From: Phaeosaccion multiseriatum
Lineage: Eukaryota > Protista > Ochrophyta, other classes
Reading direction: 5' to 3'
Assembly (NCBI GenBank): GCA_965112735.1
Contig: OZ218953.1
Location: 5,084,001 to 5,148,000, forward strand
Length of the DNA stretch: 64,000 nt
Part shown: in pieces, positions 73 through 55,300 of the stretch
Numbering within the stretch: position 1 is the stretch's first letter
Layout of the letters: every line of letters begins with the position of its first letter
Notes under the pieces: generated by a model
Told to the model about the DNA's origin: nothing
Seen by the model: only the letters and a program-made list of their open reading frames with translations
Databases searched by the model: none
Position numbers and translations under genes: made by a program

Positions 73-2107
73 TGCCCGCAGACACCTCCACCAGCACGTG
101 AGCTTGCGTGCATTGCTTTCCTCCTTTTCCGCCTGTACAGTAAGTCAATGATCCACAGCGTACGTCAATGAGCCACCGAGTAAGTCAATGGGCCACAGAC
201 AGCCATACCATCGATTATCGTCCATTATCGTTGAATCGCTTCTAGTGGAATGCGAGGATTGAAAGGAAGGAGGGTGGTGAATGGACGCGCAAGAGAGAGC
301 TTACAAGCAAGTCTAGCTAAGGATGGCAGTCCATGGACAGAGCAGATGAGTCTGTTGGCTTACAGACTAACTAACTACCTCTGTTAGCTTACTAAAACTA
401 ACCTGTTAGCTTACTAACAAACAAACTAACTATCCTCTGTTAGCTTACTGACAAACTAACTACAAGTAACTAACCTGAATGCGCCGCTCTTCCACATCGA
501 ATCTCCACCGCTGCAAGGCCCGGTCCTTGGCACCCTGTTCGGCGCGCGGAGGGGGGGGGTGGCAGGTGCAGGAGACAGGAGAGAGATGACGGTTACAGGT
601 GACAGGTGAGTTGACAAGTGACCAGGCGACAGGGTTACAGCGGTAGTTTCAGCAGGCGGGGGAAGGAGTGGGGAAGGGGAGAGCACAGAGAGGGGAAGCT
701 CTTTCTACTGTCCCCCCCCCCCTCCTCGGCCAGTGGGTCGCAGTGGGTCGGTGCCGGTGTGCGTGTGGGTGTGAGCGGGGCAATCGGGCCGAAGGGGTTG
801 AGGGGAAAAGGCCAACCAAACAAGCAGAGCAGGGAGAGAAAGCAGGGGCCACGGCTGACAGCGCCACTTGTGTCCCCCCCCCCCCTTGACTGAAGAGGAA
901 CTTCGCTGAGGTATCGCGCGGACAATGTGCTGACTTCTCGCGCTGACAATTTGCTGACTTATCGCGCTGACTATTTGCTGACTTATAGCGCTGACTATTT
1001 GCCGACTTACGTGCCATCTGCGGTACATCTTCTGCAGAACTTTCGCGGCACGGTCTTGAAGCACCCTTTCCCATTCGCCGGGCTTCTTCGCCTTCACCTA
1101 AGGGGGGGGAGGGAGGGAGGAAGAGAGTGAGTGATTGAATGAGTGATTGAGTGAGTGATTGAGTGAGTGAGAGAGTGATTGAGTGAATGAGTGAATGACT
1201 GAGATAGAAAGGTGCATCCCTCCTACGCCTGTAACTGTGCCATGCCATGCCTTGTCTGTGCCCTCCTCCCCTCCCTCCCTCCCTCCCTCCCTCCCTCCCT
1301 CCCTCCCTCCCTCCCTCCCTCCCTCCCTCCCTCCCTCCCTCCCTCCCTCCCTCCCTCCCTCCCTCCCTCCCTCCCTCCCTGCCTGCCTGCCTGCCTGCCT
1401 CCCTCCCTCCTCCCTGCCTCCCTCCCTCCCTCCCTCCCTTCCTCCCTCCCTCCCTCCCTCCCTCCTTCCCTGCCTCCCTCCCTCACTGCCTACCTCCCTC
1501 CCTCCCTCCCTCCCTCCCTCCCTCCCTCCCTCCCTCCCTCCCTCCCTCCCTCCCTCCCTCCCTCTCTCCCTCCCTCCCTCCCTCCCTCCCTCCTTCCCTG
1601 CCTGCCTGCCTGCCTGCCTCCCTGCCTGCCTCCCTCCTCCCTCCCTCCCTCCCTCCCTCCCCCCCTCCCTCCTTCCCTCCCTGCCTGCCTGCCTGCCTCC
1701 CTGTCTGCCTCCCTCCTCCCTCCCTCCCTCCCTCCCTCCCTCCCTCCCTCCCTGCCTGCCTCCCTGCCTCCCTCCTTCCCTCCCTCCCTCCCTCCCTCCC
1801 TCCCTCCCTCCCTCCCTCCCTCCCTCCCTCCCTCCCTCCCTCCCTCCCTCCCTCCCTCCCTCCCTCCCTCCCTCCCTCCCTCCCTCCCCCCTCCCTCCCT
1901 CCCTCCCTCCCTCCCTCCCTCCCCTCCTCGCCCCCCTCCCCTCCTTCTAGTCTGCCCCACTGACCTTCTCTCGCATGTCGCTCTCCTGCTTGCCGAGCAG
2001 TATGTCCTTGGCGACTTCCAGCAGCTCCTCCTCAGTGGCCTGAGTAAATCACCACATTGTCCACATGGGCCATGTTAGGATGGGGGGGGGCAAAGCAAAC
2101 ACACACA

Positions 2108-39395: not shown

Positions 39396-40356
39396 TGTAT
39401 TACGTCTCCTCCTCCCCCACAGTTCCTCTCTCCTCCGCCGCATGGCCGCCCTCCTTTTTTTTTTTGATTATCGGTCCCATCCCTCATTTGCAGGTGTATG
39501 GGAGTATCATTGAAACTGACACACAAACTAAAGCCGTTGGCGCCGCAGTTTCAGTGCTTTGGACGCGGTTTTACCATCGATCTTGCCTCCGCTATAGACG
39601 GGCAAGGGGAAACAACAGCAACATCAGAGAGGACCACAAGGAGGAGGATTGCAAACTTTTATCACTCACCCTCCGGGATAAGCAGGAGGAAGGACAGGAG
39701 TACTCTTGAGCTGCTCTTTTCCACCTATCGTCTCGATTTTTGGCGTCAAGCTGGGGAGGCAACTGGTGGGCTCTACCACATTAGCCGCCGCGGGCGGCTT
39801 CAGGAGAAGGCTACGACCGGAAGGGCACTAAATCACTAGTGTGCTTTGAGGAGAGGTGAGCAGCGTCGTACTTTGTGGGAGGGCATTGCATTTGGGTGCT
39901 GATTCTGCGGCTGCTGCTGGTGCTGGTGCTGGTGCTGGTGCTGGGTGCTGCTGCGGCATTGTGCTGTTACTGCTCTTGTTTTGCCAAACCGCCGGTACTC
40001 CTATTACAGCTGACCCTTGAATACACTTAGCTGCGAGGCTGACCAGCAACGCTATTGCATTCTATAATGGTGTGTTGGGGTGGGCGGTGAGGGCATCGTG
40101 TAACGGAATGGTGTGTGAGCCTTGGGATGACTGCTTCTGCTGGTACCACTGCGGAACGCTAAAGAGTAACTTGGGCTCGATGATACGCATCCATCAGTTG
40201 TAAAGGCAGCAGCGACTTACTTGCCTACTCCTCTCTCTTCCTCCTCGTCCTCCTCCTCCTCCTCCTCCTCATCCTCCCCCCACGACATCCACCCTTCCTC
40301 CCCTCCCCTTCCCTCAGGCCCAAGGGTCGCCCTTGGTGCACTCCGGTGGCAAGGCC

Positions 40357-43300
40357 ATGGGCCATCATCCACAACGGTGGCGCTCCATCATGGCGCTGCC
40401 CGGTTTAGTTTTGTTAGTGCTCGTGGCGCTTGCTGCTTTTCAAATACAAGTAGCCCGAGCAGCAGCTGTCAGCGTACCTGGCTCGCCGTCAGCGGTGCGG
40501 CTGAACGTACTCAGCGGCGACTCAATAGAAGTTAGCTTCGACGCTCCCCTTTCGGACGGGGGCGCGGTGGTGCAAAGCTACGAGGTGGAGTGGGACACCG
40601 ACCCAGGCACACGAGAGGTGCAGTGGGTGCGGAGTTACGCAGATACAGGACCCAACGAGATTCAGACCATTACGACCACTGCAGACGATGTAGACGAGGT
40701 CCAGATGGTAGTCACGGCGGCCAATCAGACGCTAGAAGTACAACAGATTGTGGTTTCGGACGCCACATCTGGAAGCTTCATGCTGAGTTTGGACCTGACA
40801 TCACGGGGGGGCAGCGTGCAAACCTCAGGAGAGATTGCCTACAATGCTAACAGCACCACCGACAGCGGGTACCTGAGTGTGGGTGCGGTGCTGGAGGCGA
40901 TGCAAAATTTGGGGGAGGGTTCCATTCATGACGTGAGCAGTGTCTACACCATTGACGCAGGCAATGTGTACACCTACACGTGGAATGTGACCTTCGCCGG
41001 CAGCCTTGGTAACATTCCCCAAATGACGCTCGGGGGCGCGAGCCTCAGCCCGGCGGGGGCAGATGTGAATATCACCACCATCCAGGACGGCAACGTACTG
41101 GGGGGTAGCTTTCGTTTGGGGTATGGGGGCTTTACCACAGCCAGCATTGACCACGACGCCAGCGGGGCCGAGTTTGCCGCGGCGCTGGAGGACCTGGCCA
41201 GTATTGACAGCGTGGTTGTGGAACGGTTAGGCCCCGACGACCAGGGAGGTTACAATTGGACAGTAGCCTTTACGAGCGACAATCAGGACGGCAATCTCGA
41301 CCTCATGACTGTGGAAGACCTGGCGCTGCTCACCGGAGACGGGGCATCAGTCGAGGTCGAGGCAGTCACGGACGGCTCGGAGCTGAGCGGCTCGTTCAAC
41401 GTCACCTGGGACGGAGCCGACGACGCCAACACCACCACCCTTGCCTTCAACGCCACGGCAGAGGATGTCAGAACCGCCCTCGAGGGAGACCTCGGGACGG
41501 GGGCCCTTGCAGTCTATCGCACGGGGCCGGATAACCAACTCGGCTACGTGTGGGAGGTGCACTTCACAGAGATGGAGGGGGACGTGCCTGACCTTGTGGC
41601 GAGTGCGTTCAACTCATCGTTGGAGGGGGGGGGCGCCACACTCACGGTGGAGGAGACGAGACAAGGCACCTGGCAGGAGATACAGACCATTGCAGCCACT
41701 GCAGCGTCCGGAGCAGCGAACGGCGTGTCCAACGATACGATGTTTGTGCTTGCCTACAATGGGTACGAGACGGGACCCATTCTCGCCGTGGTGAACAACA
41801 GCTGCGACCCCGCCCAGCCGGAGGTGCAGGTGGTCTACACAACCACAACGGACACGCAGAGCAGCGGCGGGGACAGCCACGTGAGCTACGGGCTCACCTT
41901 CCGTCTCGTCTACTACGACGCGGCTGGAGAGGCGTACGCTACGAGTGACATCGACGCCAACCCCGACTTTGGTGACTGCAGCGCACCCGCAGCTGTCATT
42001 CAGAGCGAGTTGGAGGATCTGTTGGACTCTTCCGTTACCGTGTCGTACTCCGAGGCAGCAGATGACGACGGCTGCACTTGGGCCATTACCTTTTCGGACA
42101 CGCCGGGCAATGTGGAGGGCATGAAGGTGGAGTCGGGGACGAGCTACGGCCCCGACGACGAGGTGTATGTGGGGGATGATACCGTAGGGGTGTACACCCA
42201 AGTCAATGGCACGATTGACGCCATCAAGTACGAGCTGGAGCTGCTCACAGGGGTGGGAGAGGTGACGGTTACAGCGAGGAACGAGACCAGCAGCACAGGG
42301 GAGTGCATTTGGGACGTGGAGTTTGAAGACAACACTGGCAGTGCAGCCGATGGAGGGGAGCTTCTCCTTCTCACAGTGACTTACTATGAGAGCACCAACG
42401 GCACATATAGCAATGAGACCTTCACGGGCGACACCATCTCTGTAGCACGGAATCGCAGCGGCACCAGCGAGGAGCTGGGTGGGGACTTTGTCTTGGCCTA
42501 CATGGGGGAGAGGACCCAGTACCTTCCTAGCGACGCCTCGGCCAGGGACGTGAAACTCGCACTGGAGGCCTTGGACAGCATCGTCAGCGTGGACGTGGAA
42601 CGATACGACGGTGACGCCCTCGTCAACGGAGGCTACACCTGGGCCGTCAGCTTCCTCACCAGCCTTGGAGACTTGGTTGCTCTGACCACCGACGTTGGTG
42701 CTGTGACGGGCACTGCCCCCACCATGACTGTCGGAGAGATCACAACGGGCGTGGCCCCTCCCTTCAACAGCCTAGACTCCGTCAATGGTCTCTCTCTCGG
42801 CTCCACCACCATCACCGACCTGAGCGACCTCTCCCTCACCATCACCGATCTGGAGGAGGGCATTGCGTACTATGTGCGAGTGACGGCTGCCAACACCCTC
42901 GGTTACGGCGCTGCGGAGATGGCTTCTTCCCCGTTCGCCATCCCCGAGCCCCAGCCCAGCGACGCCCCTCTCAACGTGACCATTGAGGCCATCGACGGCT
43001 CCACCCTTCGCGTGGGCTTCTCCACACCAGCGTCTACGGGAGGGGAGGAAGTGGACAAGTATCGAGTGGAGTACTCCACCGAGCCTTTTGAGGATGAGGT
43101 ACAGTCCGTTCGCATCAGCTGCGGCGTGCAAGAGGAGGTGCAGGTGGTGACTTCTTCGGCAGAGGCAGTGGTGGAGGTACAACTTGTGCACGCGAAACTG
43201 GACGACACCTTTAGTGACTTATACAGCGGAGCCATGGTGTACGAGGTTCAGAACGTTACGTGTGACGCCAGCGGGGGCTCCTTCGCCCTCACTTTTGACG

Positions 43301-46300
43301 GACACACCACCGACTCCATCGCCTACGACGCCTCAGAAATCGAGGTGGCAGCGGCGCTGGAGGAGCTCTCCAACATCAACAGCGTCAATGTGACCTTCGC
43401 CGCCGGAGTCAGCACCGCCTGCAACGAGTACCCTTCGCTGGAGGCCTTTGCCGTTACTTTTGTTGACATGGAAGACTTTAGCGGAGACGTGCCCTTGATG
43501 ACGAGTGTGGTGGACGATCTGACGGGCAATCGACGGGTGACTGTGGTGGAGCTCGAGCAAGGAGTGGCCACCATGTCGGGCACCTTCAAGTTGACGTTCA
43601 AGGGACACACCACCACCGAGCTGGCCTACAATGCCGGTGTGGAGGACGTGCAGTCCGCGCTGGAGTATCTGGACCCGATCGGCGAGGGGGGGGTGAATGT
43701 GAGCAGCGGAAACCTGACCAGCGCCTACGAAACCATGTGGAGGGTAAGCTTCAGCGGTGGCACGGTGGAGGGAGACGTGGAGGCCCTGCAAGTGTACAGT
43801 TACAACGACAAGCTGATGGGCAACGGAGCCTCCCTCCAAGTATACACCGACGGAGAGGAGAGCAACTTCGAGCGAAGGGGGGCAGAGCCTTCCATCCAAG
43901 GCAACGTGCTATCGGGCACGTTTGCGCTGACGCTTCGCGGACACACCACCGACAGCATTGAGTTTAATGCTGCGGAAACCACCATGAAGGCCCGTTTGGA
44001 GGAGCTGGACAATGTGGGGACGGTGGAGGTGGACCGATCGGGGCCAGACGGACAGATGGGCTATGCTTGGACCATCACCTTCCTCGACAACCCGGGCTAC
44101 TTTCCGATGGGTAGTGGCAATGTGGCTGCACTCGAGGTGGACTCCAGTGGCCTCATGGGCACTTCACCGCTGGTCAATGTCACCGACCTGACCGAGGGCA
44201 GCGAGCCCCTTGACGGAACCTTCTCCCTCTCTCTCATGGGCAGCAACAATGTTACCTATACGACGGAGGAGCTGTACTACAACGCGCTTCCGTCCGAGCT
44301 GGAGGCGTCTCTGGAAGCGCTTGCAGGGGTGGGGAATGTGGCCGTGGAGAGGGTGGAGAACACCAACGGCTACTCGTGGGCCGTCACCTTCCTCTCCTGC
44401 CGTGCCAACGCAACCACCGGTGTCGACATTTGCAACGATGGAGACGTGGAGCTGCTCGCCTTTTACACCAATGCCACGTCTCTCACGGGCTGCTCCGACA
44501 ACGTCACTACCTCCGTCACCACTGTGGTGCAAGGAAGCGCAGGAGACAGCAGCAGCAGCGTGGAGCTCAGCGACTTGACGGCAGGCAGTCCGTACAGCGT
44601 AGACTTGGAGGACCTGACTGCAGGCACCGCTGTCTACGCTCGTGTGGCCGCCCACACGGTCATGTCGTACGGTCTCAAGAGCCTGACTACGCCGGAGTAC
44701 GCCACCCCCAGTAACGTGCAACCCGGAGCCTTGGAGCCGGTGCGTCTCGTCAGCAGCACCGACACGAGTATCAGCCTCGAGTGGAGGCCCCCCACGGTGG
44801 ACGGGGGCGAGGCGGTGGGCGGTTACGAACTGTGGATGGGCGAATGGGCAACGTCCAATTTCCGCTTGGTGTATGACGGTCTGGACGCGCCGGATGTAAC
44901 CTCCTTCACCGTCAGCACGACCAACTTTCCCGAGCTGGAGAGTGGCAGGACGTATCGGTTCCAGGCGAGGGCCGTCAACTACTGCAGCGCCATCGACACT
45001 GACGAGGCATGCTATGGCGAGTTTAGCGAGGCGGTGGCCTACACTGTGCGGGCGGCAAGAGCTCCCCAAGCCCCTCTGCAGGCGCACCGAGACGCAAATT
45101 CGAATGCCTCTGCCATTTCAATTTACTGGGACGCCCCCATGGACAATGGCGGTAGCGCTGTGACTTCCTACAAGGTTTACACAGAGGACCAGGCCGGCAA
45201 CACGACCACGCACACCGTCGCCGTCGATTCATCCGCCTCGGACGCTATGTGGGAGCCGCTGGGGCTAACGGTGGACGTGAACGAGGGGGAGCTGTACACC
45301 TTCTCCATTCAGGCCGTCAACAGCCTGGGCACCTCCGGAGTCGGTCCTTCTCTCACCGTGGTGGCCGCTCTCCTCCCAGGTATGGACGCCAGCACCAATC
45401 AGACGTACGCGCTTACCAAGCCGCAAGTGGAAGACGTTAGTGCTACGACCATTTCTGTGAGCTGGAGCGACCCGGCTGACACGGGAGGGAGTCCCATCAC
45501 CGGCTACGTGTTGTACATGTTCGAAGGCGTGGCACTCAACTCGCAAGCGGACGAGGAACCCGTCAAGAAGGAGGTGCAGGTGGTCACCACGGAGGTATCT
45601 GACCCCGCCCGGGAAGTACAGGAGTTGGTGGTACGCAACGTCACAGGCGGCACCTTCACTCTGCGTGTGCAGGCCGATGGACTGGGCGGGGAGGTGGACG
45701 GCACCACTGCAGAGATTGATTTCGATGCTTCTGAGGCCAGCGTGGAGGCACTCATCGCTGCCATTGACTCCGATTTGGGCTCTGTCGATGTGTCTCGCTC
45801 CATCAGTGTGAGTGGCACCACCTACACGTGGAGCATCACATTCTCGGACTATGAGGGAGACGTGGAGCTGTTGGTGATAGACACGGCCGAGCTCGACGCC
45901 TCCTCTGGCGCTGTGATTGACTACGACGTTAGCACGGTCACAGATGGCACGGAGCGACTGCAGGGCACCTTCACACTGGCTCTGGACGGTTACGAGACTT
46001 ACCCCCTGGGGTACTCGGTTTCCGAGGCTGGCATGAAGCAGGCCCTGGAGAATCTCGACTCTGTGGGCGTGGTGACGGTGAGCCGGAACGAGTCGACCTC
46101 GGGAGGTGACTACGGAGCCTATGCATGGACCATCACTTTCGATAGCGACGTTGGTGACATGGCCATGCTGGAGGCCACCGCGGGGAGACTCACAGGAGGC
46201 GACGCAGACATCAGCGTGAGCGAGTACCAAGCGGGCTCTGCAGCGACCGTGGTGTATGACGGGGAGGGGCAGCCTTCCGTCAAGAGCTGGGCCGTTACGG

Positions 46301-49300
46301 GACTGACCGAGGACAGCCTGTACGCCTTCAAGGTGGTGCCTATCAACGCCGTGGGGGAGGGCATCCCCACGGGGGCTTCCGCCACCGTCGTGGCTCGGGA
46401 AGGGGCCGCCGCCGGAATGACCACCGCCAACGGCCCCGCGCTGAGAGTGGGTATGGCTGGCCTGGTGTACGAGCAACAAACCATCACCTCCGCCCCCGGC
46501 GTGAACTTTACTCTCAGCTACGGAGCCTTCGGCACCGAGTCCGGCGCGATATACTCCGACAGCCCGAGCGTGTCCAGCGCAAGCGAGGTGGAGCAACTAC
46601 TGGAGAGTCTAGTGGGCGATGTGCACGTGACGAGGTCGGAGAGCAACGTCACCGGCAACACCCTCTTTGTGTGGACGGTAACCTTCCTCGACCTGACGGG
46701 AGATGTAGACATGCTCTATGTCAACACCACGGACTCGACCGACGGCAGCCTCAACGTGACCATTGCCGAGTACATTAAGGGCGAGGCAAACGAGTTCACC
46801 ATCTCGCCTCGCAGGGCCTCTGGAGCCCCCCTCACCGACCTCACCTCCACATCTTCCTTCGCCACCAAGGGGAAGGGTGCCTACAGTTTCGCCGGCACAG
46901 ACGTCTTCTTTACGGAGCTGTACAAGGAGGAGGTATGGGAGTCCGACGGCGGTGTGGCTTCTTACCACGGCGTGCAGTACGAGGTGCAGCAGATCACCAT
47001 CCCAGCCGGCAGCACGGGCTCTTTCTGCCTCGGCTTCGAGTGGGATGGCACCTTATACAGCAGCACCAACGGCACTGGTGCAGGCTGTGTGGAAGTGGAC
47101 GAGGGAGGTGCGGCGCTTAAGGCCGCCCTCGAGCAGCTCTCTCCTCTCAGCGATGTGGATGTGTCGTACAGCAGCAGCAGCGAGTCGAGCAGCGGTGACT
47201 TCATCTATCGTGTGTACTTTACCGGCCTTCTTGGTGACTTGCCGCTCCTCAGCCAGGCCAATGCCAGCGACGCACTCACACCCGGTCAGATGACCATCTC
47301 GGAGGTTCAGCCCGGGTATGCGGAGGTGCAGGCGGTGATTGTCTCTGCAGACACGCGCTTTGTGTATGAGGTACAGTCTCTGGAGTTGAGTGATGTTAGC
47401 GACACCATCGCAGGGCAAGGATTGACCTTCAATCTGACGTTGGAGGGAGCCTCCAACAGTGTGGAAGTGAGCGTGGACGCTTCCGCTGCGGAGATGGAGG
47501 AGGCTTTGGAGTCACTCAGCAACGTGTACGACGTTAGTGTGGTGCGCGTGGACAAGCTCAACTACAACAGCAGCAGCAGCAGCAGCTCCTCCTCTGTGGT
47601 GGAGAACTCCACCCTCTGGACCGTTACTTTCTACGACCCGGTGGGAGACCTTCCTGGGCTCGAAGTGGACTATACCGACATTGAGAGTGCCTCCGCTTCC
47701 TCCGCGATTGACGTGGTGGAGGTGGTGGAAGGAGAGTCGCCTCTCAACGGCACTTTCACCCTCTCCTACCGGGGGCAATTCACGGAAGATTTGGACTTCT
47801 TCGCTTCGGAGGACGATGTTGAAGATGCTTTAGAGGCTCTTTCCACCATAACAAGCGTGCAAGTGAGCCGAGATGACTTGGGTACGGGCTACCGCTGGTG
47901 GGTGACCTTCACCGGAGACGTTGGTGATCTGCCCGACGTCGTCGCATACCCCTATCGCTGGGAGGAGCAGCGCATTGTGCTCGCGGGTGGCGACCCCACT
48001 CCCATCGGTGGCTCCTTCAAGCTCAAGTTAGGCAACGGTACCTACACCGCTGCTTTGCCGTACGACATCACTGCAGACGGCATGCAGGGAGCGTTGGAAG
48101 CGCTCTCCAACGTGGGCAGTGTCGACGTGAGCAAGGAGGTGGGCACCAACGGACAGGCCGAGTGGGCAGTCACTTTCCGTGACCTGGTTGGCGACGTGCA
48201 GCTCCTCACGGCGAATTCCAACCTTCTCACCGGCAGCGAGGCGACAGTCCATGTGTATGAGGAAGTGAGCGGCAGCGATGCAAGCCTCACCGGAAACGCC
48301 CCCGTCCTTGAAGTGGTGGAGATGCTTGCCGGCTACCCTCGGTACACGGGTAGCTACCTGCCCAAGACCACGGGCGACTACCAAGTGAAGGTCATGCAGT
48401 TGCTCCAAGGGGGCCTCAGCGCGACTTACTACGACAACCAATGGCTGCTCGGCACGCCCGCCGTCCAGCGTGTGGACCCGCAGATCAAGTTCGACTGGGG
48501 CACCGGTGCGGTGACGACTTACGGTCGAGACTACGTGTCTGTGCGGTGGGAGGGCAAGCTGTTGGCGACGACTTCGGAGGACTACACCCTCTACCTGCTG
48601 GCCAACGACGGAGCGCGGCTGTACCTCGACCATGAGCTGATTGTGGACGAGTGGGAGGCGACGAGCGGCGTGGACGTACGCGTCACGGTGGCACTCACCG
48701 AGGGCACTTACCACGACCTTGTGGTGGAGTACAGAGAGGAGGTTGGCACCGCTTCCATCTCCCTCATGTGGAGCAGCTTCAGCATCACCCCTGAGGTCAT
48801 TCCGACCGAGAACCTTTTCTATGCTTCCTCTATTGCCGGCAGCCCCTATGAGGTTGGCGTGGTGCCTGGTGCGGCGACATATCCTTACACGGATGCGTTT
48901 GGAGAGGGACTGGAGACAGCCGCCGCCGGAGTGCCTGCCTCCTTCGTCATTCAGGTAGGTGGAAGGAAGGAAGGGAGGAGAGGAGAGGACGGGAGAGGGG
49001 CGTATTCTGCGTCTGTGCTTCTCCTGCTTTCCTTTTGTTTTAGTGTGGTCTTGTATTCCTCTTTCTTTCCTTCTTTCATTCTTTCTTTCTTCTCCTTTTC
49101 CTCCTCTCTCTATGTAACGTTCCCTCTGTTCGCACCTAATGCTTCTCTCTCTCCCTCTATCCCTCCCTCTCTCTCTTGCTCTCCCTTCCTCTCTCTCTCT
49201 CTCTCTCTCTCTCTTCCTCCCCCCCCCTCCTTTCTCACTCTCACCCAGGCCAAGGACGGGTGGGGCAACAACGAAACATACGACATCACCGGTGCGGACG

Positions 49301-52300
49301 GACGTGCCTTCCTCGTGACCCTCACCGACGGCACCCTCGTCCTCGGAGCCAACAGCCTGGGCGAGCCCGTCTACATCGGAGACGGGCAATACCGAGTTAC
49401 CTACACCGCCACCCGGGCCGGCAGTTACAGCCTGTCCGTGCAAACCGCCTCCGGAACGGACATATACTGCGGGCTGGGACAGGAGGACAAGTGCTCTCCC
49501 TTCGATGTGACCGTTACACCAGGCCCCACCGTGGCTGCCGTTTCAGAAACCGAGGGAGAGTCCAGCCCCGCGATGGACGCTCTTGTGGAGGCCGTCGTCG
49601 GAGTGAGTGGGTACTTTACCGTCCAAGCTAAGGACACGTTCGGAAACAATCGCCTCACAGGAGGCGACGACGTGGCTGCAAAGATGGTGTACTCCGACTC
49701 CATCAGCTACCGAGGCGCCGTACAGGACAACGAGGACGGTACCTACTCAGTGATTTACACCGTTCCCCGGGCAGGTATATTTGCCATGCAGGTCACCATT
49801 GGAGGAGAGCCGGTGCAGCACTGCTCCCCTCCTTACACACCTCTTGGCGTTACGGAACGGGCCTACAATGGGATGGCAGTCTACAGTGCCCCAGCCTCGT
49901 GTGACACATCCTACCCCGAGCTGCTCGTGGTGCACAGCGGCCTGCACGTCCCCAGTAGTACCGCCACGGAAACCTACTCCTCCACTGCTGCCTTGAGCGA
50001 GGCGATTGTGGGGGTGCCTTCCCGCTTCACCATAGAGGCTCGCGATAGCTTCGGCAACCTCCGTGTCGGGGACAACACTACGCATTCGACGGACTATGGA
50101 GACGGAGCGAGTGATGCTTTCCTTGTGACTCTGTCCGGTCCTGCGGGCTACCAAGTCAAGACGTCGACCGCAGTCACACACATCAACTTTACAAGCGTAG
50201 TGGATGTGGATGGAGAGGGTGCATCTGCTGCCTTCCGACTAAGCTTCGGCGATTACATCACACAGGACATTCCGCACAATGCTTCCGCGGCCACGCTTCA
50301 AGCCGCGCTGAGTGCCATGCGATTATCTGACGACTCCGACGGCGGCGACCAGGAGGTGACCATGGTGGAGGCAGTGGTGACCAAGAGCTACAGCAACGAT
50401 TCATGGACGGTTACGCTCCTCAGTCATCTCGACGAGTGGATGGAGACGCCTCTATCGGTGGTGGAGAGTAGTGACAACTCCACCTCGGTGTCCGGTGCCA
50501 TGCAGGCCACCAAGGCCGCCAGCGCGGGGCTTTACCCTGTCGAGTACACGTGTTGGTACTCCGGTATGTACTCCATGTCTGTGACCAGCCCCGACGGGAC
50601 TTTGCACGTGGCCAGCAGCGCCTTCATGGTGGAGGTTACCACCTACGAGACTGAGGCAGCGAGCTCCATCGCCACAGGGCAGGGCTTGGTGGGCGGCGTG
50701 GCAGGCGAGCAACTCTCGATTCTGGTACAGGCACGGGACTGGCGGCAGCGAGAGGTTCAGACCATCCGTTCCTCCGCTGCGGTGGTGCCTGTGGTAGCCG
50801 AGGTGCAGAACGTCACCTTCTCAGGGCTCGGTAGTGTGGAGCTCACCTTCCTCGGTGCCAATGTGACTACGGTTACCACTTCAACGACGGCGTCTGAGCT
50901 GGCAACTGCATTAGAAGCTCTCCCCACCGTAAGTGAGGTGGAGGTGACCGGCACCGTCGCCCAAGGGTTTTCTGTAACGTTTACGGGGGTGCGTGGCGAC
51001 TTGCCTCTGTTCAACGCCGTGCCCAGCAGTAAAGCGACGGCTACAGAAGTGGTCCAGGGCGATGCGCCCTTCCGCAAGGAGGTGCAGGCTTTCATGTGTA
51101 GCAGCGACGCCAACGGAACGTCCACCGTGACTTTCCGCGACTACGACAGCGTCGATGTACAACTGTTCGACAACGGCACGGCGCTCTCTGTGGAGGACTT
51201 TGAAACTCTCCTGTCCTCCTCCCTCGTGGAGGTTTCCGTATCCGCCGTGGACGACTCCCAGCTGTGCACTGGCAATTACGTCTACATTACCTTGGAAGAG
51301 GTGGTGGGCGACGTGTCTGCCCTTCAGTTCTCGCAGCCCTCCCTCGGCGGCTCCCTCACCCTCGATGCCTCAGCTGGTTTGTCTGGCGTCTTCCCCCTGT
51401 GGGGCACCTTCACTCTGAGCTACGGAGAGGAGACAACGTCTGAGCTGTCCAGCGATGCTTCTGCCGAGGAGGTGGAGACCGCTCTCGAGGCTCTGGACGG
51501 GATTGGTGCCGTGACGGTCGACAAGGAGATGCTGGGTCTGACGGTGGACTCAGAGGGCGTCAACACGTACGCCAACGGCACCGCTCTGACCAGCGTGTGG
51601 ACCGTGGTCTTCGACGGGCTCTGCAGTAACGCCTCTGCTTCGGATGGCAACGGATGCCCTACCGACCTTGGCGACCTGCCCCTGCTTGTGGTGGACTCGA
51701 GCTCGTTGCAGTGGGCCGACAGCCCGTACGAGCACCAAGCCGCACCGGAGTTGGTTGTGCTTGAGGCAATCAAGGGTACGGCAGGCAACAATCAGACGCA
51801 CGACAAGGTCAGCGTCGATGACATTAGCCTGGTGATGGCACTCAACGGAGGTGCAGGTCTCGGCATTGGTGTCCATGAGGAACAAGAGCTCTCTTGCTAC
51901 TCGCCTTCTTCTTCCTCGCCTACCGGGTCTTTCCTGCTGAGCTTCATGGGCAGCGAGGTGGAGGTGGCCATGAACAGCACTCGACAGGAGCTGCTCTCTC
52001 TCTTGGAGAATGGCTTGTCCATCGACGCCACTCTGGAGCCGTCCAGCCTCGCTCTCTGCGGCGCAGACAACGAGACAACAACCATCATCTTTGCCTCCAA
52101 CTACACTCAGCCGCTCCTCCTTGTCAGCGATGTGTCTCCTTCCAGCAATAAGGTGGTCGTCAAGGAGATGGTGAGGGCTGTGGACTCTGTGGAGTACCTC
52201 GGAGACGGAGTGTATGAGGTCTTATACACGCCCGCACGCGCGGGCTCCTACGTCCAGATCATTGCCATCGGCGGGGAGGAGATTGCAACGGACCTGACGG

Positions 52301-55300
52301 AAGGGGTAACGGTTACACCTGCTGCTACCAATGCGGTCTACACCACGTTTGAGACCTTGTCAGTTGCCATCCAAGAGGTGGAGCATACGCACAGCATTCA
52401 AGCGACAGATGAGTTTGGCAACGAGCTGTCCGGCCCCGCCAGCGGTGTGTTTGTGTCCTACCTTGACGTAGTCGAATCCGCCAAGACATCATCCGAGCGA
52501 GTCGTCGCCAAGGTCACGAGTCGGGCGACACCCAACACGGACGGGCAGTACAATGTGGCCTTCACCCCCCAATTGGCGGGGGAGTACAAACTCACCAACG
52601 CCTACCGTCAGAGTGGGGGTCTCCTGGCCACTTTCTACGAGAATGTTGACCTTCGTACCTCCCCCCAGTTGGGGAGCCGTCTGGCAACTTTCCCTTACCA
52701 TGCGAGCGCGCACTGCCCCGCGGGTATGGCGGCTCGTGACATTGGCTGTGATAGCACCACTCTCTCTGCTGGTATCGACTTTGCATGGGGCACGGACTCC
52801 CCTCTCCCGGACCTCGACTTCCCTGCAGACTACTTTAGCGTGTCCTGGGAGGGGCTGGTAGAGGGTCCGGTCAACGGCACGGTGACCTTCTCCGTCCTCA
52901 CCTCGGATCGGGTGAGGCTCACCGTTGGAGAAGAAGTGGTGTTCGATACCATCCTTTCTAACAGCACGACCTCCACCAGCGGTACTGTGAGCAGCGCCAA
53001 GTCCAGTGTGAGTGGGGTTGTCAGCATGACGGAGGAGGAGTTGCAGAGCATCAAACTTGACTTTGTCGAGTCTACCGACAGTGCCAGTATCAGCCTTATG
53101 TGGGCCTACGCAGGGCAGGCCGAGCCGACGGTCGTCCCCGCCTCTGCCCTCTTCTACGAGCGACACTTGTCGGGCTCGCCTAGTACTCTCATCGTATACC
53201 CTGGTGATGTGGACGGGGCCACGTCTGAGGCAAGTGGTAACGGCCTGACCGAGTGTGTGGCCATGGAGGACTGCTCCTTCACCATCCAGGCACGGGACAC
53301 AGATGGCAACAACTTGTTCAATGCGGGAAGCGACGAGTGGGTGGTGACAGTAGAGGGAAGCGACGGCTGGGCCGCCGAGGCGAGGATTGGCGAGTACTAT
53401 ACCGCCAACGCCGACAGCAGCGACAGCAGCGCGCCACTCACTGTCAACGCCACCTACGTGGAGAACGATTGGGAGCTCGTAGGAATGGTGAGCTGCAGGC
53501 AGGGCTATCGTGTGTGCAGTACGGCGGCCGACCTCACCGGCAATGTGTCTCGTGGAGACCTTCTCGTCATCAACGGAGAGACCCTCCGTGTGTCTGAGAG
53601 CTCCTCGGACTCCATCACCAACGGCACGCTGCCCCTCGCCACCATGTTCCGAGGGGTGACAGGAGACTACATGGCGTATAAGGCCGGCGAGGAGACAGGC
53701 ACCTACACCGTCACCTACACGCCACTCGTGCGGGGAGAGTACGTCATCACTGTGCAGGAGCCGGCGGAGGGTGAGCAGCAGCGCATCACCTCTTCGCCGG
53801 AGTACGGCAGCGTGGCATATGGCAACTTCACCCTCTCCTTCACCGGGAAGGAGGAGGAGGAGGAGGAGGAGGAAGAGACGACGTCTTTGCTCTCCTTTGA
53901 TGCCTCGGCCAGCGAGGTGCAGGAGGCGCTAAACAACCTTACTGCCCTGTCCGCCTACGGCGAGGGGGTGCAGGTCTCTCTCGGCAACTGCTCCGACGTG
54001 AGTGCAAGTTGCCAGTGGCTGGTCACCTTCCCTGCCGAGCTGGGCGACATCAGCCTCCTCACCGCCAAAGGTGGCGTGGGGAGTGGCGTGAGCCTGACGG
54101 TGGAGGAGGAGGCTGCGGGCCACCCTGCTGTGGACGTGTTGAGCAGCCCTTCCACCCTCACAGTGCTACCCAACGAGGCCGACGCTTCCCACAGCATCGC
54201 ACACGGCAAGGGTCTGTATGAGGGGGTGGCTGGAGAGAGAGCCCGCTTCACGATCCAGGCCAAGGATGCCTACAAGAACGATCGCCTCACCTCGCAAGAG
54301 GCCTCGCTGTTCAAGGTGGTGGCCTATGACTTCGACGGCGTCGCCAGCCCTGTGAGTGGGTCTGTGAAAGCGCTGGAGGATGGGCAGTATGCCGTGAGCT
54401 ACCTTCCCACCTACGCCGACAGCTACACTCTGGCAGTGGTTATGGCCACGGCGGCGGAGAGGCAGCAGATTTCGCTGACATACTCCTCTCTCGCCTCTGC
54501 GGGGGGCAATTTCCGCATCACTCTCGACGGCAAGACAACGGTCCGCCTGGCTCACGATGTGGTGAGTGTGTGTGCGCGCGTGTGTGTGTGCGTGTGTGTA
54601 TGTGTGTGTGCATGTGTGAGTGAGTGCAGTGGGCTCTGCCGCTGCTTGATTGATTATTCTGCCATCTGTGCTTTTCTCCTTGGTTTCTTGGTTTCTAACG
54701 CCTTCGCGTGTTTGTGTGTGTGCACGTTACTTCTCGTCCCCTCCCTTCCCTTCAGTCTGCAAGCAACTTGGCTGCAGCAATGGAGGAGCTTGGCATGGGC
54801 GCCGTAACGGCTACGCGATCTGTGAGTGGCACCACGTACACCTACATCGCCACCTTCGATGAATGGGTAGGCGACGTACAGGAGCTAGAGGTGGGCACCG
54901 CCTCCCTCGTCAACCTCGCCGAGGTCAACGTCACCACCACCCAACACGGAACCACCGCTCACATCAAAACGGTGGACCCTTCCTCAGACTTCCTGTCGGA
55001 CGGTTACACCAATGCCACCACCCTGGTGAACGAGCGACAGGTGGTACGCCTCGCCAGCCCGAATCAGTGGAACTCCACCCTCGAGGCCTCGGGCACCTAC
55101 GCACTGTCCTTCCGTGGGTATGAAACGGCCGAGATTGCCGTTACGGCAGATGCAGCAACGGTGGAGGAGGCTTTGGAGGCATTGGAGGTGGTTGGAGATG
55201 TGAATGTGACACGCCACACCGTCTCGGGTGGCCCTTACGGCTTTGAGTTTGTCATTGAATTCATCGGGGCAGGGTGCCACACGATCGAATGCTGGGGCAA

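Follow-up and report, generated by a model that had tools for sequence, protein, structure and literature searches.

Predicted last-in-first-out nesting of a repeated domain inside split FN3 domains of a giant secreted protein from Phaeosaccion multiseriatum

We analyzed 64,000 nucleotides of DNA from the alga Phaeosaccion multiseriatum (assembly GCA_965112735.1, contig OZ218953.1, positions 5,084,001 to 5,148,000 of the forward strand). This whole stretch is called the window, and positions are counted from its first letter. An open reading frame (ORF) of 4824 codons at 40333-54807(+), with a signal-peptide-like segment at its start, very probably encodes part of a giant secreted stramenopile protein. 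In this protein, a backbone of FN3 domains would carry arms built from copies of a single domain, which is recognized by the motif EVQ in its first strand. The copies would be nested in themselves with last-in-first-out pairing, that is, the first strand laid down last finds its partner first. Three FN3 domains are interrupted in this manner, in regions that we call blocks 1, 2, and 5 after the number of the FN3 domain. Structure prediction supported the nested domain-in-domain architecture of block 2, and strand counts and comparisons with homologues suggest similar pairings in blocks 1 and 5.

Results

Split FN3 domains and matched numbers of strands and bodies

FN3 #1, #2, and #5 were each interrupted after strand C by 230-740 residues. 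The whole-protein scores of the Pfam fn3 profile (PF00041) were 31-32 bits against a cutoff of 25, and the N-terminal halves matched profile positions 1-46 only. The match at 40474 covered positions 2-43 of 84, and that at 42952 covered positions 1-46 of 84. Since the profile was matched over its first half only, the FN3 domains are truly split. An earlier note on this DNA, made from the sequence alone, had described split FN3 domains together with the positions of EVQ motifs and cysteines, and all of these were confirmed here.

Each insert consisted of a run of short EVQ strands followed by an equal number of bodies of ~100 amino acids (aa). A hidden Markov model (HMM) of the body found six, four, and two bodies in blocks 1, 2, and 5, respectively, which gives strand/body counts of 6/6, 4/4, and 2/2. 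When E denotes a strand and B a body, the order was EEEE BBB E(E B)B B in block 1, EEEE BBBB in block 2, and EE BB in block 5, and all three are balanced in the manner of brackets. The motif E[VI]Q was located at 40615, 40657, 40696, 40735, 41677, and 41821 in block 1, at 43096, 43135, 43174, and 43243 in block 2, and at 45571 and 45613 in block 5. These 12 occurrences in 40474-46400 compare with 0.5 expected and with a maximum of 4 in 2000 shuffles. In the domains that stand alone in the protein, the EVQ strand directly precedes the body, which indicates that the strand is part of the domain.

Structure prediction of block 2

Block 2 (42952-44712; all features described here are on the + strand) begins with the N-terminal half of FN3 #2 at 42952-43095 (model residues 1-48). 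The four EVQ strands follow at 43096-43266 (model 50-56, 62-69, 75-82, and 98-105), with Cys 930 after strand 1 and Cys 977 in strand 4. Bodies 1 and 2 (model 106-205 and 206-303) lie at 43267-43860, bodies 3 and 4 (model 318-416 and 420-528) at 43903-44535, and the C-terminal half of FN3 #2 (model 531-587) at 44542-44712.

The full block was modeled by AlphaFold2 (AF2) with a 40-row orthologue alignment (A2). The predicted local distance difference test (pLDDT) score was 94.3 and the predicted template modeling (pTM) score was 0.73, and all four EVQ segments were strands with pLDDT of ~95 or above. Solved single FN3 domains (95-105 aa) aligned 90-101 residues over model residues 1..587, with a root-mean-square deviation (rmsd) of 1.6-2.6 Å and Z scores of 12-14.5. 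Each FN3 half alone has fewer than 60 residues; therefore, an alignment of 90-101 residues indicates that the halves rejoin in the model, as the earlier note had proposed. This supports the closure of FN3 #2 as a complete seven-strand sandwich around the arm.

We also modeled residues 1-303 alone (alignment A3), from which bodies 3 and 4 and the FN3 C-terminal half were removed. The pLDDT of residues 51-60 decreased from 96 to 48 and that of residues 61-70 from 97 to 63, and strands 1 and 2 became coil. Strands 3 and 4 were still strands with pLDDT of 89-96, and FN3 chains aligned only 46 residues. This is the result predicted by last-in-first-out pairing, and it argues against both a self-contained sheet of strands and first-in-first-out pairing.

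Most solved chains aligned to the inner contiguous domain of the truncated model (95..205). However, single chains of the ferredoxin/RRM type aligned 73-101 residues over the range 70-76..300-303, examples being 6exx_A (73 of 79 aa), 9ki1_1 (Z 6.8), and 9mt4_Q. Only a single domain made of strand 3 (75-82) and body 2 (206-300), with the inner domain skipped, would account for this range. A shape search of the ESM Atlas returned one suggestive match, a diatom model of 198 aa that aligned 182 residues over 76-396. Furthermore, each of the four strands was conserved position by position in ~30 orthologues.

Cysteine evidence in block 2

Cysteines of block 2 relevant to pairing are aa 930 (43120), aa 977 (43261), aa 1030 (43420), and aa 1387 (44491). 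Cys 930 stands right after strand 1, and Cys 1387 is the third cysteine of body 4. In alignment A2, both were present in 12 rows and neither in 10; in the two apparent exceptions, the second cysteine had moved by 6-7 alignment columns, and no row had the body cysteine alone. The co-occurrence in these 24 informative orthologues gave a Fisher p value of 6.7e-5, although the orthologues are phylogenetically related and this figure, as well as the permutation figures, overstates their independence. The co-occurrence ties strand 1 to body 4, which is 457 residues away, and thus bears out the claim of the earlier note that the cysteine of the outermost strand has its partner in the last body. When strand 1 is assigned to body 4, the pairing of strand 2 with body 3 follows by elimination. 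The pair aa 977/aa 1030, in strand 4 and body 1, was almost invariant, which fits the pairing and provides no covariation signal. A cysteine-parity test of last-in-first-out versus first-in-first-out pairing favored the former in asymmetric cases only, and carries no information where outer and inner strands both have a cysteine. The HMM scores of artificially joined strands and bodies did not discriminate between partners because profile scores are additive.

Collectively, prediction and comparison pair strand 4 with body 1 and strand 3 with body 2 (truncation model and alignment ranges), and strand 1 with body 4 (truncation model and cysteine co-occurrence). The proposal that bodies need distant EVQ strands in last-in-first-out order was thus upheld for this block.

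Blocks 1 and 5

In block 1 (40474-42945), the N-terminal half of FN3 #1 (strands A-C) occupies 40474-40608. Four stacked first strands with EVQ (aa 95, 109, 122, and 135), which are conserved in orthologues, follow at 40612-40758, and the body HMM placed bodies 1-3 (aa 144-254, 255-349, and 350-446) at 40762-41670. By bracket logic, these bodies would close on the strands at aa 135, 122, and 109. A second unit at 41674-42450 comprises a strand at aa 449, an N-terminal body part (aa 457-491) ending in NSC, an inserted whole domain (strand at aa 497 and body at aa 505-620), and a C-terminal body part (aa 621-706) containing ECIW. The last body (aa 714-815) lies at 42472-42777 and, by the same logic, would be the partner of the outermost strand at aa 95. 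The C-terminal half of FN3 #1 is located at 42790-42945 and contains LTITDLEEGIAYYVRVTAAN at 42835-42894.

The body HMM detected one body of block 1 in two pieces, aa 457-491 and aa 621-706. Cys 491, 549, 581, and 658 were conserved in nearly all of 20 orthologues, and the inner domain and the split outer domain carry them at corresponding places. Two orthologues, P0007 and P0008, represent a natural deletion: they do not have aa 492-620, and their outer domain is uninterrupted. Therefore, aa 457-491 and aa 621-706 are two halves of one domain, which confirms the earlier suggestion that NSC and ECIW enclose an inserted domain. The insert occupies a further insertion site, immediately in front of the helix. 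Block 1 as a whole, which was collinear in ~18 orthologues, reads as a base domain (strand 95 and body 714) that contains two inserted units with depths of three and two, respectively. The body HMM thus confirmed the counts in the earlier note, with the qualification that the 6/6 of block 1 does not represent a single stack six domains deep.

Block 5 (45415-46362) is the smallest. On the basis of motif and HMM positions, it is composed of the N-terminal half of FN3 #5 at 45415-45567, two EVQ strands at 45568-45636, two bodies at 45640-45954 and 45955-46257, and the C-terminal half of FN3 #5 at 46258-46362. The orthologous block in the homologue P0003 reads EEBB. The counts and the comparison with orthologues suggest that the halves of FN3 #1 and #5 are split around nested domains in the same manner as those of FN3 #2.

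Homologues

A HMMER scan with block 2 matched 3033 proteins at E < 1e-3. More than 20 of them covered the whole block in one stretch with 32-58% identity, retaining four strands and four bodies, with a conserved flavor of its own for each strand. The best match was to Phaeothamnion confervicola (46-58% identity), and the oomycetes Thraustotheca clavata (a "secreted protein") and Globisporangium splendens were also among the relatives. The pattern EEEEBBBB recurred widely in the homologues.

We counted strands with a position-specific scoring matrix (~4% false hits) and bodies with the body HMM. Among 157 inserts bounded by FN3 halves, the two counts were equal in 56% and within one of each other in 93% (Spearman 0.86), while permuted counts were equal in 21.5%. 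The matched counts that the earlier note expected of homologues were thus found to this extent, and most of the misses were by one and look like undetected strands. A table of strand runs against body runs over whole proteins was noisy (Spearman 0.37), with approximately one-fifth of the strands missed by detection and many of the proteins being fragments. Some homologues (P0001, P0018, and P0015) had stacks of 8-14 first strands within a single FN3 domain that was split by about 2000-2500 residues. In P0001, a metagenomic homologue of 7591 aa, 14 consecutive EVQ strands with a 13-residue period were found at residues 227-420, and long body runs with additional stacks come after them.

Relationship of the EVQ domain to phage decoration domains

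The repeated domain is, according to the model, a domain of ~110 aa with a ferredoxin/RRM-like fold and the EVQ motif in its first strand. Pfam gave no consistent family at E 0.1 or better for any of 73 domain copies or for pieces of the window. However, a profile of 73 contiguous algal and oomycete domains matched gp23 of mycobacteriophage Bxb1 with an E value of 3.6e-50, and an 8-sequence profile matched the virion decoration domain of the Bxb1 gp23/gp14/gp19 type with an E value of 4.7e-22. The profiles also matched the C-terminal domains of the Bxb1 capsid and tail tube, and the match to the PHROG major tail protein phrog_10909 had an E value of 3e-6. The inner domain of the model (95..205) superposed on gp23 over 101 residues (Z 15.1, rmsd 1.8 Å, 39% identity) with a chain range of 267..609. 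Other superpositions were with gp14 (Z 12.4), gp19 (Z 10.9-11.3), and a protein of phage Patience (Z 10.4), with rmsd of 1.8-2.3 Å throughout. By profile comparison, we regard the EVQ domain as homologous to the decoration domain of Bxb1 gp23, gp14, and gp19. The EVQ, GxFxL, and WxVTF motifs are common to the algal domain and gp23 (tail tip cage/Dit, PDB 9d93 chain M). The same domain family occurs as the C-terminal domains of gp14 (major capsid protein, 9d9w/9d9x), gp19 (tail tube, 9d93 chain J), and the Patience minor capsid protein (8giu). This link to the decoration domain of a mycobacteriophage, for which a solved structure shows nesting, had escaped the earlier note.

The gp23 sequence (Bxb1 AF271693, 13928-15985) reads N-terminal half, N-terminal half, whole domain, C-terminal half, C-terminal half. 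In the solved structure, one domain is composed of residues 267-329 and about 567-609 and encloses two more copies. Together, this order and the alignment of 101 residues across 267..609 show a three-deep nest in the solved phage protein as well. The gp23 nest differs from the algal blocks in its depth of three and in its setting, a phage virion protein with no FN3 around the nest. The split in its host domain, moreover, follows the fourth strand (about profile position 58) and not the first.

Tail-sheath proteins, the outer domains of FliD and flagellin, and RRM-like folds were distant fold neighbors (Z 4-7). Flagellin, FliD, and contractile-tail sheath proteins grow by domains inserted into domains, giving out-and-back surface projections, and their outer or insertion domains have a similar alpha/beta fold (Z 5-7). 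However, they have no detectable sequence homology to the EVQ domain, belong to bacterial or phage filaments polymerized from many subunits, and usually contain 2-4 different domains, not repeated insertions of a single domain into itself. FN3 and other beta-sandwich domains also tolerate an insert in a loop and still close, as the parent FN3 does in our model. In contrast to the usual loop insertions, the insert here has 230-740 residues, and about 2000-2500 in homologues, and is itself recursively nested. A literature search on nested or recursive domain insertion, the Bxb1 tail tip, and OCM5/tubular mastigonemes, outside which the Bxb1 structure paper lay, found nothing relevant.

In OCM5 (PDB 9ufe chain EA), the profile matched a single contiguous copy at residues 194-300 with an E value of 8.6e-6. 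From its name alone, we tentatively take OCM5 to be an Ochromonas mastigoneme protein. If so, it is also a stramenopile extracellular protein, but has a single uninterrupted copy in a protein of 368 aa, unlike the algal blocks. OCM6 (chain FA of the same entry) gave a weak match (E 0.2). If OCM5 and OCM6 are Ochromonas mastigoneme proteins, the EVQ domain family may be part of stramenopile flagellar hairs. We consider this match to be a lead on function and not evidence.

Gene and remaining protein layout

The start codon is at 40357 or 40390, and the translated signal peptide (40357-40464) has a hydrophobic core ending in QVARA. A six-frame HMM scan revealed no body-domain matches upstream of 40333. 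Pfam identified FN3, PA14, and filamin repeats in the long ORF. FN3 #3 and #4, at 44722-45402, are uninterrupted (three stretches of fn3 match, E 2.9e-23). In the rest of the long ORF (46336-54807), further EVQ domains stand singly, in tandem, or nested, together with two PA14 domains and filamin repeats. The PA14 domains, at 48502-48810 (E 2.4e-16) and about 52670-53140 (E 7.4e-10), lie downstream of the nested blocks and alternate with filamin/GEX2-like Ig repeats, which is a hint of carbohydrate binding. At 47740-47990 (aa 2470-2551), one body was found without the usual last strand (L.G....V.V.E...G) and was directly joined to a degenerate EEQ strand of the following domain, which makes it a variant of the usual boundary between domains. 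Two homopolymer runs lie within body-domain loops, namely, nine Ser residues at ~aa 2405 (window 47500-47620) and nine Glu residues at ~aa 4510 (window 53850-53880).

A CT-rich low-complexity stretch at 48947-49257 interrupts a filamin repeat in frame (FVIQV before and AKDGWGNN after) and is probably an in-frame intron. The long ORF terminates at 54690-54807 in a (GT)n-derived VCVCVC stretch just past the start of a body domain, and this stretch looks like another intron. Body domains restart after it at 55086 in a different frame, and the six-frame HMM scan detected further copies, with changes of frame, to 63374. These matches in other frames indicate that 40333-54807(+) is the 5' part of a larger, intron-containing gene, which probably continues through introns beyond the end of the window. 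Public DNA contigs, which come from the same sample, agreed with 44800-48946 without any difference. They break at the stretch at 48947-49257, and contigs were also cut at 47553-47602, in the region of the poly-Ser run.

Discussion

In our proposal, FN3 domains in a row, with PA14 and filamin repeats after them, constitute the backbone of this protein, and FN3 #1, #2, and #5 each bear an arm, built of the ~110-aa EVQ domain, in the loop that follows strand C. Additional copies of this domain would have been inserted between the first strand and the remainder of an existing copy. The chain would then lay down first strands on its way outward and bodies on its return, such that strand n pairs with body N-n+1. 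Neighboring levels would be joined by two short linkers into a double-connected rod, with a single point of exit from and return to the FN3 domain. Such an arm may fold from the inside out, the innermost domain first, with outer strands waiting for bodies made hundreds of residues later, and may be shielded from tension along the backbone. The protein may have the shape of a bottle-brush filament.

Orphan strands and strand-less bodies are also the ingredients of donor-strand exchange. Surplus EVQ strands may accordingly fill the strand-less bodies of another molecule, and the blocks may be polymerization modules comparable to chaperone-usher pili; AF2 runs are monomeric and blind to such intermolecular pairing. 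Nevertheless, we consider this improbable. Strands and bodies match in number insert by insert between FN3 halves and not merely over the protein, the FN3 halves close in cis in the model, and the co-occurrence of Cys 930 and Cys 1387 fits a fixed partner. Moreover, the solved Bxb1 gp23 builds the same kind of nest in one chain.

Less probable still, and in our opinion very unlikely, is that the EVQ runs are an independent beta-sheet stalk or linker, that bodies fold without a first strand, and that the matched numbers are a by-product of tandem duplication. Although a stack of strands resembles a 13-aa tandem repeat, the EVQ strand is never missing from contiguous copies of the domain, and it is where the alignment of solved relatives starts (model 95/96..205). 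The loss of structure in strands 1 and 2 of the truncated model, with strands 3 and 4 retained, would not be expected of a self-contained sheet, and the alignment of the outer domain begins at residue 70-76. An artefact, in which a misassembled repeat region or a non-coding frame mimics the domain order, is hardly credible: although the locus contains repeats and the public contigs are interrupted by low-complexity stretches, the frame is open for 4824 codons, contigs match 44800-48946 without differences (albeit from the same sample), and more than 20 proteins, including those of Phaeothamnion, Thraustotheca, and Globisporangium, are collinear over the whole of blocks 1 and 2 at 32-58% identity.

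Several points weigh against nested arms with last-in-first-out pairing. The strand-body contacts in the AF2 models were deduced from alignment ranges, changes in pLDDT, and covariation and were not seen as contacts, and both structural tests are AF2 predictions from related alignments. In the truncated model, AF2 kept the orphan N-terminal half of FN3 at pLDDT 82-87; the decrease in pLDDT is therefore suggestive and not proof. The blindness of monomeric predictions and the relatedness of the orthologues also count here. The pairing of strand 2 with body 3 follows from elimination, and the support for blocks 1 and 5 consists of counts, sequence logic, and orthologue comparison. The exact match of counts in homologues was limited to 56% of the inserts. 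A search of sequencing runs for the gene found only DNA contigs of one sample and hence no RNA or protein evidence. The function is a guess: we tentatively suggest an extracellular structural or adhesive protein that displays many surface-decoration domains, with glycan binding as a possibility in view of the PA14 neighbors and the phage relatives.

Recursive self-insertion may well be the normal mode of growth of the EVQ family, although we hold this with less confidence than the nested arms themselves. The small fold would take up its own copies at three or more different sites, behind strand 1, ahead of the helix, and behind strand 4, and growth would run to stacks of 8-14 strands in one FN3 domain of stramenopile giant proteins. 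These stacks would then be the deepest domain nesting known, and inside-out folding would be forced, with a first strand waiting for a body made as many as about 2000 residues further on.

Most known nested domain insertions have one or two levels. In the present protein, a single domain is repeatedly inserted into itself, and stacks of up to four levels inside the loop of a split FN3 domain are an unusually deep case of a domain within a domain for a eukaryote. The arrangement is conserved between oomycetes and photosynthetic stramenopiles, which indicates that it is selected and not accidental. For annotation, the present results are a warning that 13-aa "repeats" followed by "truncated" domains can form one folded unit. 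They also raise a question of folding, as the first strand of a domain would be made hundreds to thousands of residues before its rest, and one of mechanics, namely, how load is routed in a branched single chain whose arms, with one point of entry and exit, should escape backbone tension. For protein design, the question is whether rigid rods may be built by recursion. The EVQ family, unannotated and worthy of a name, appears from profile comparison to be common to actinobacteriophage virions and stramenopile extracellular proteins, and would link the decoration of phage particles with the extracellular proteins of these organisms.

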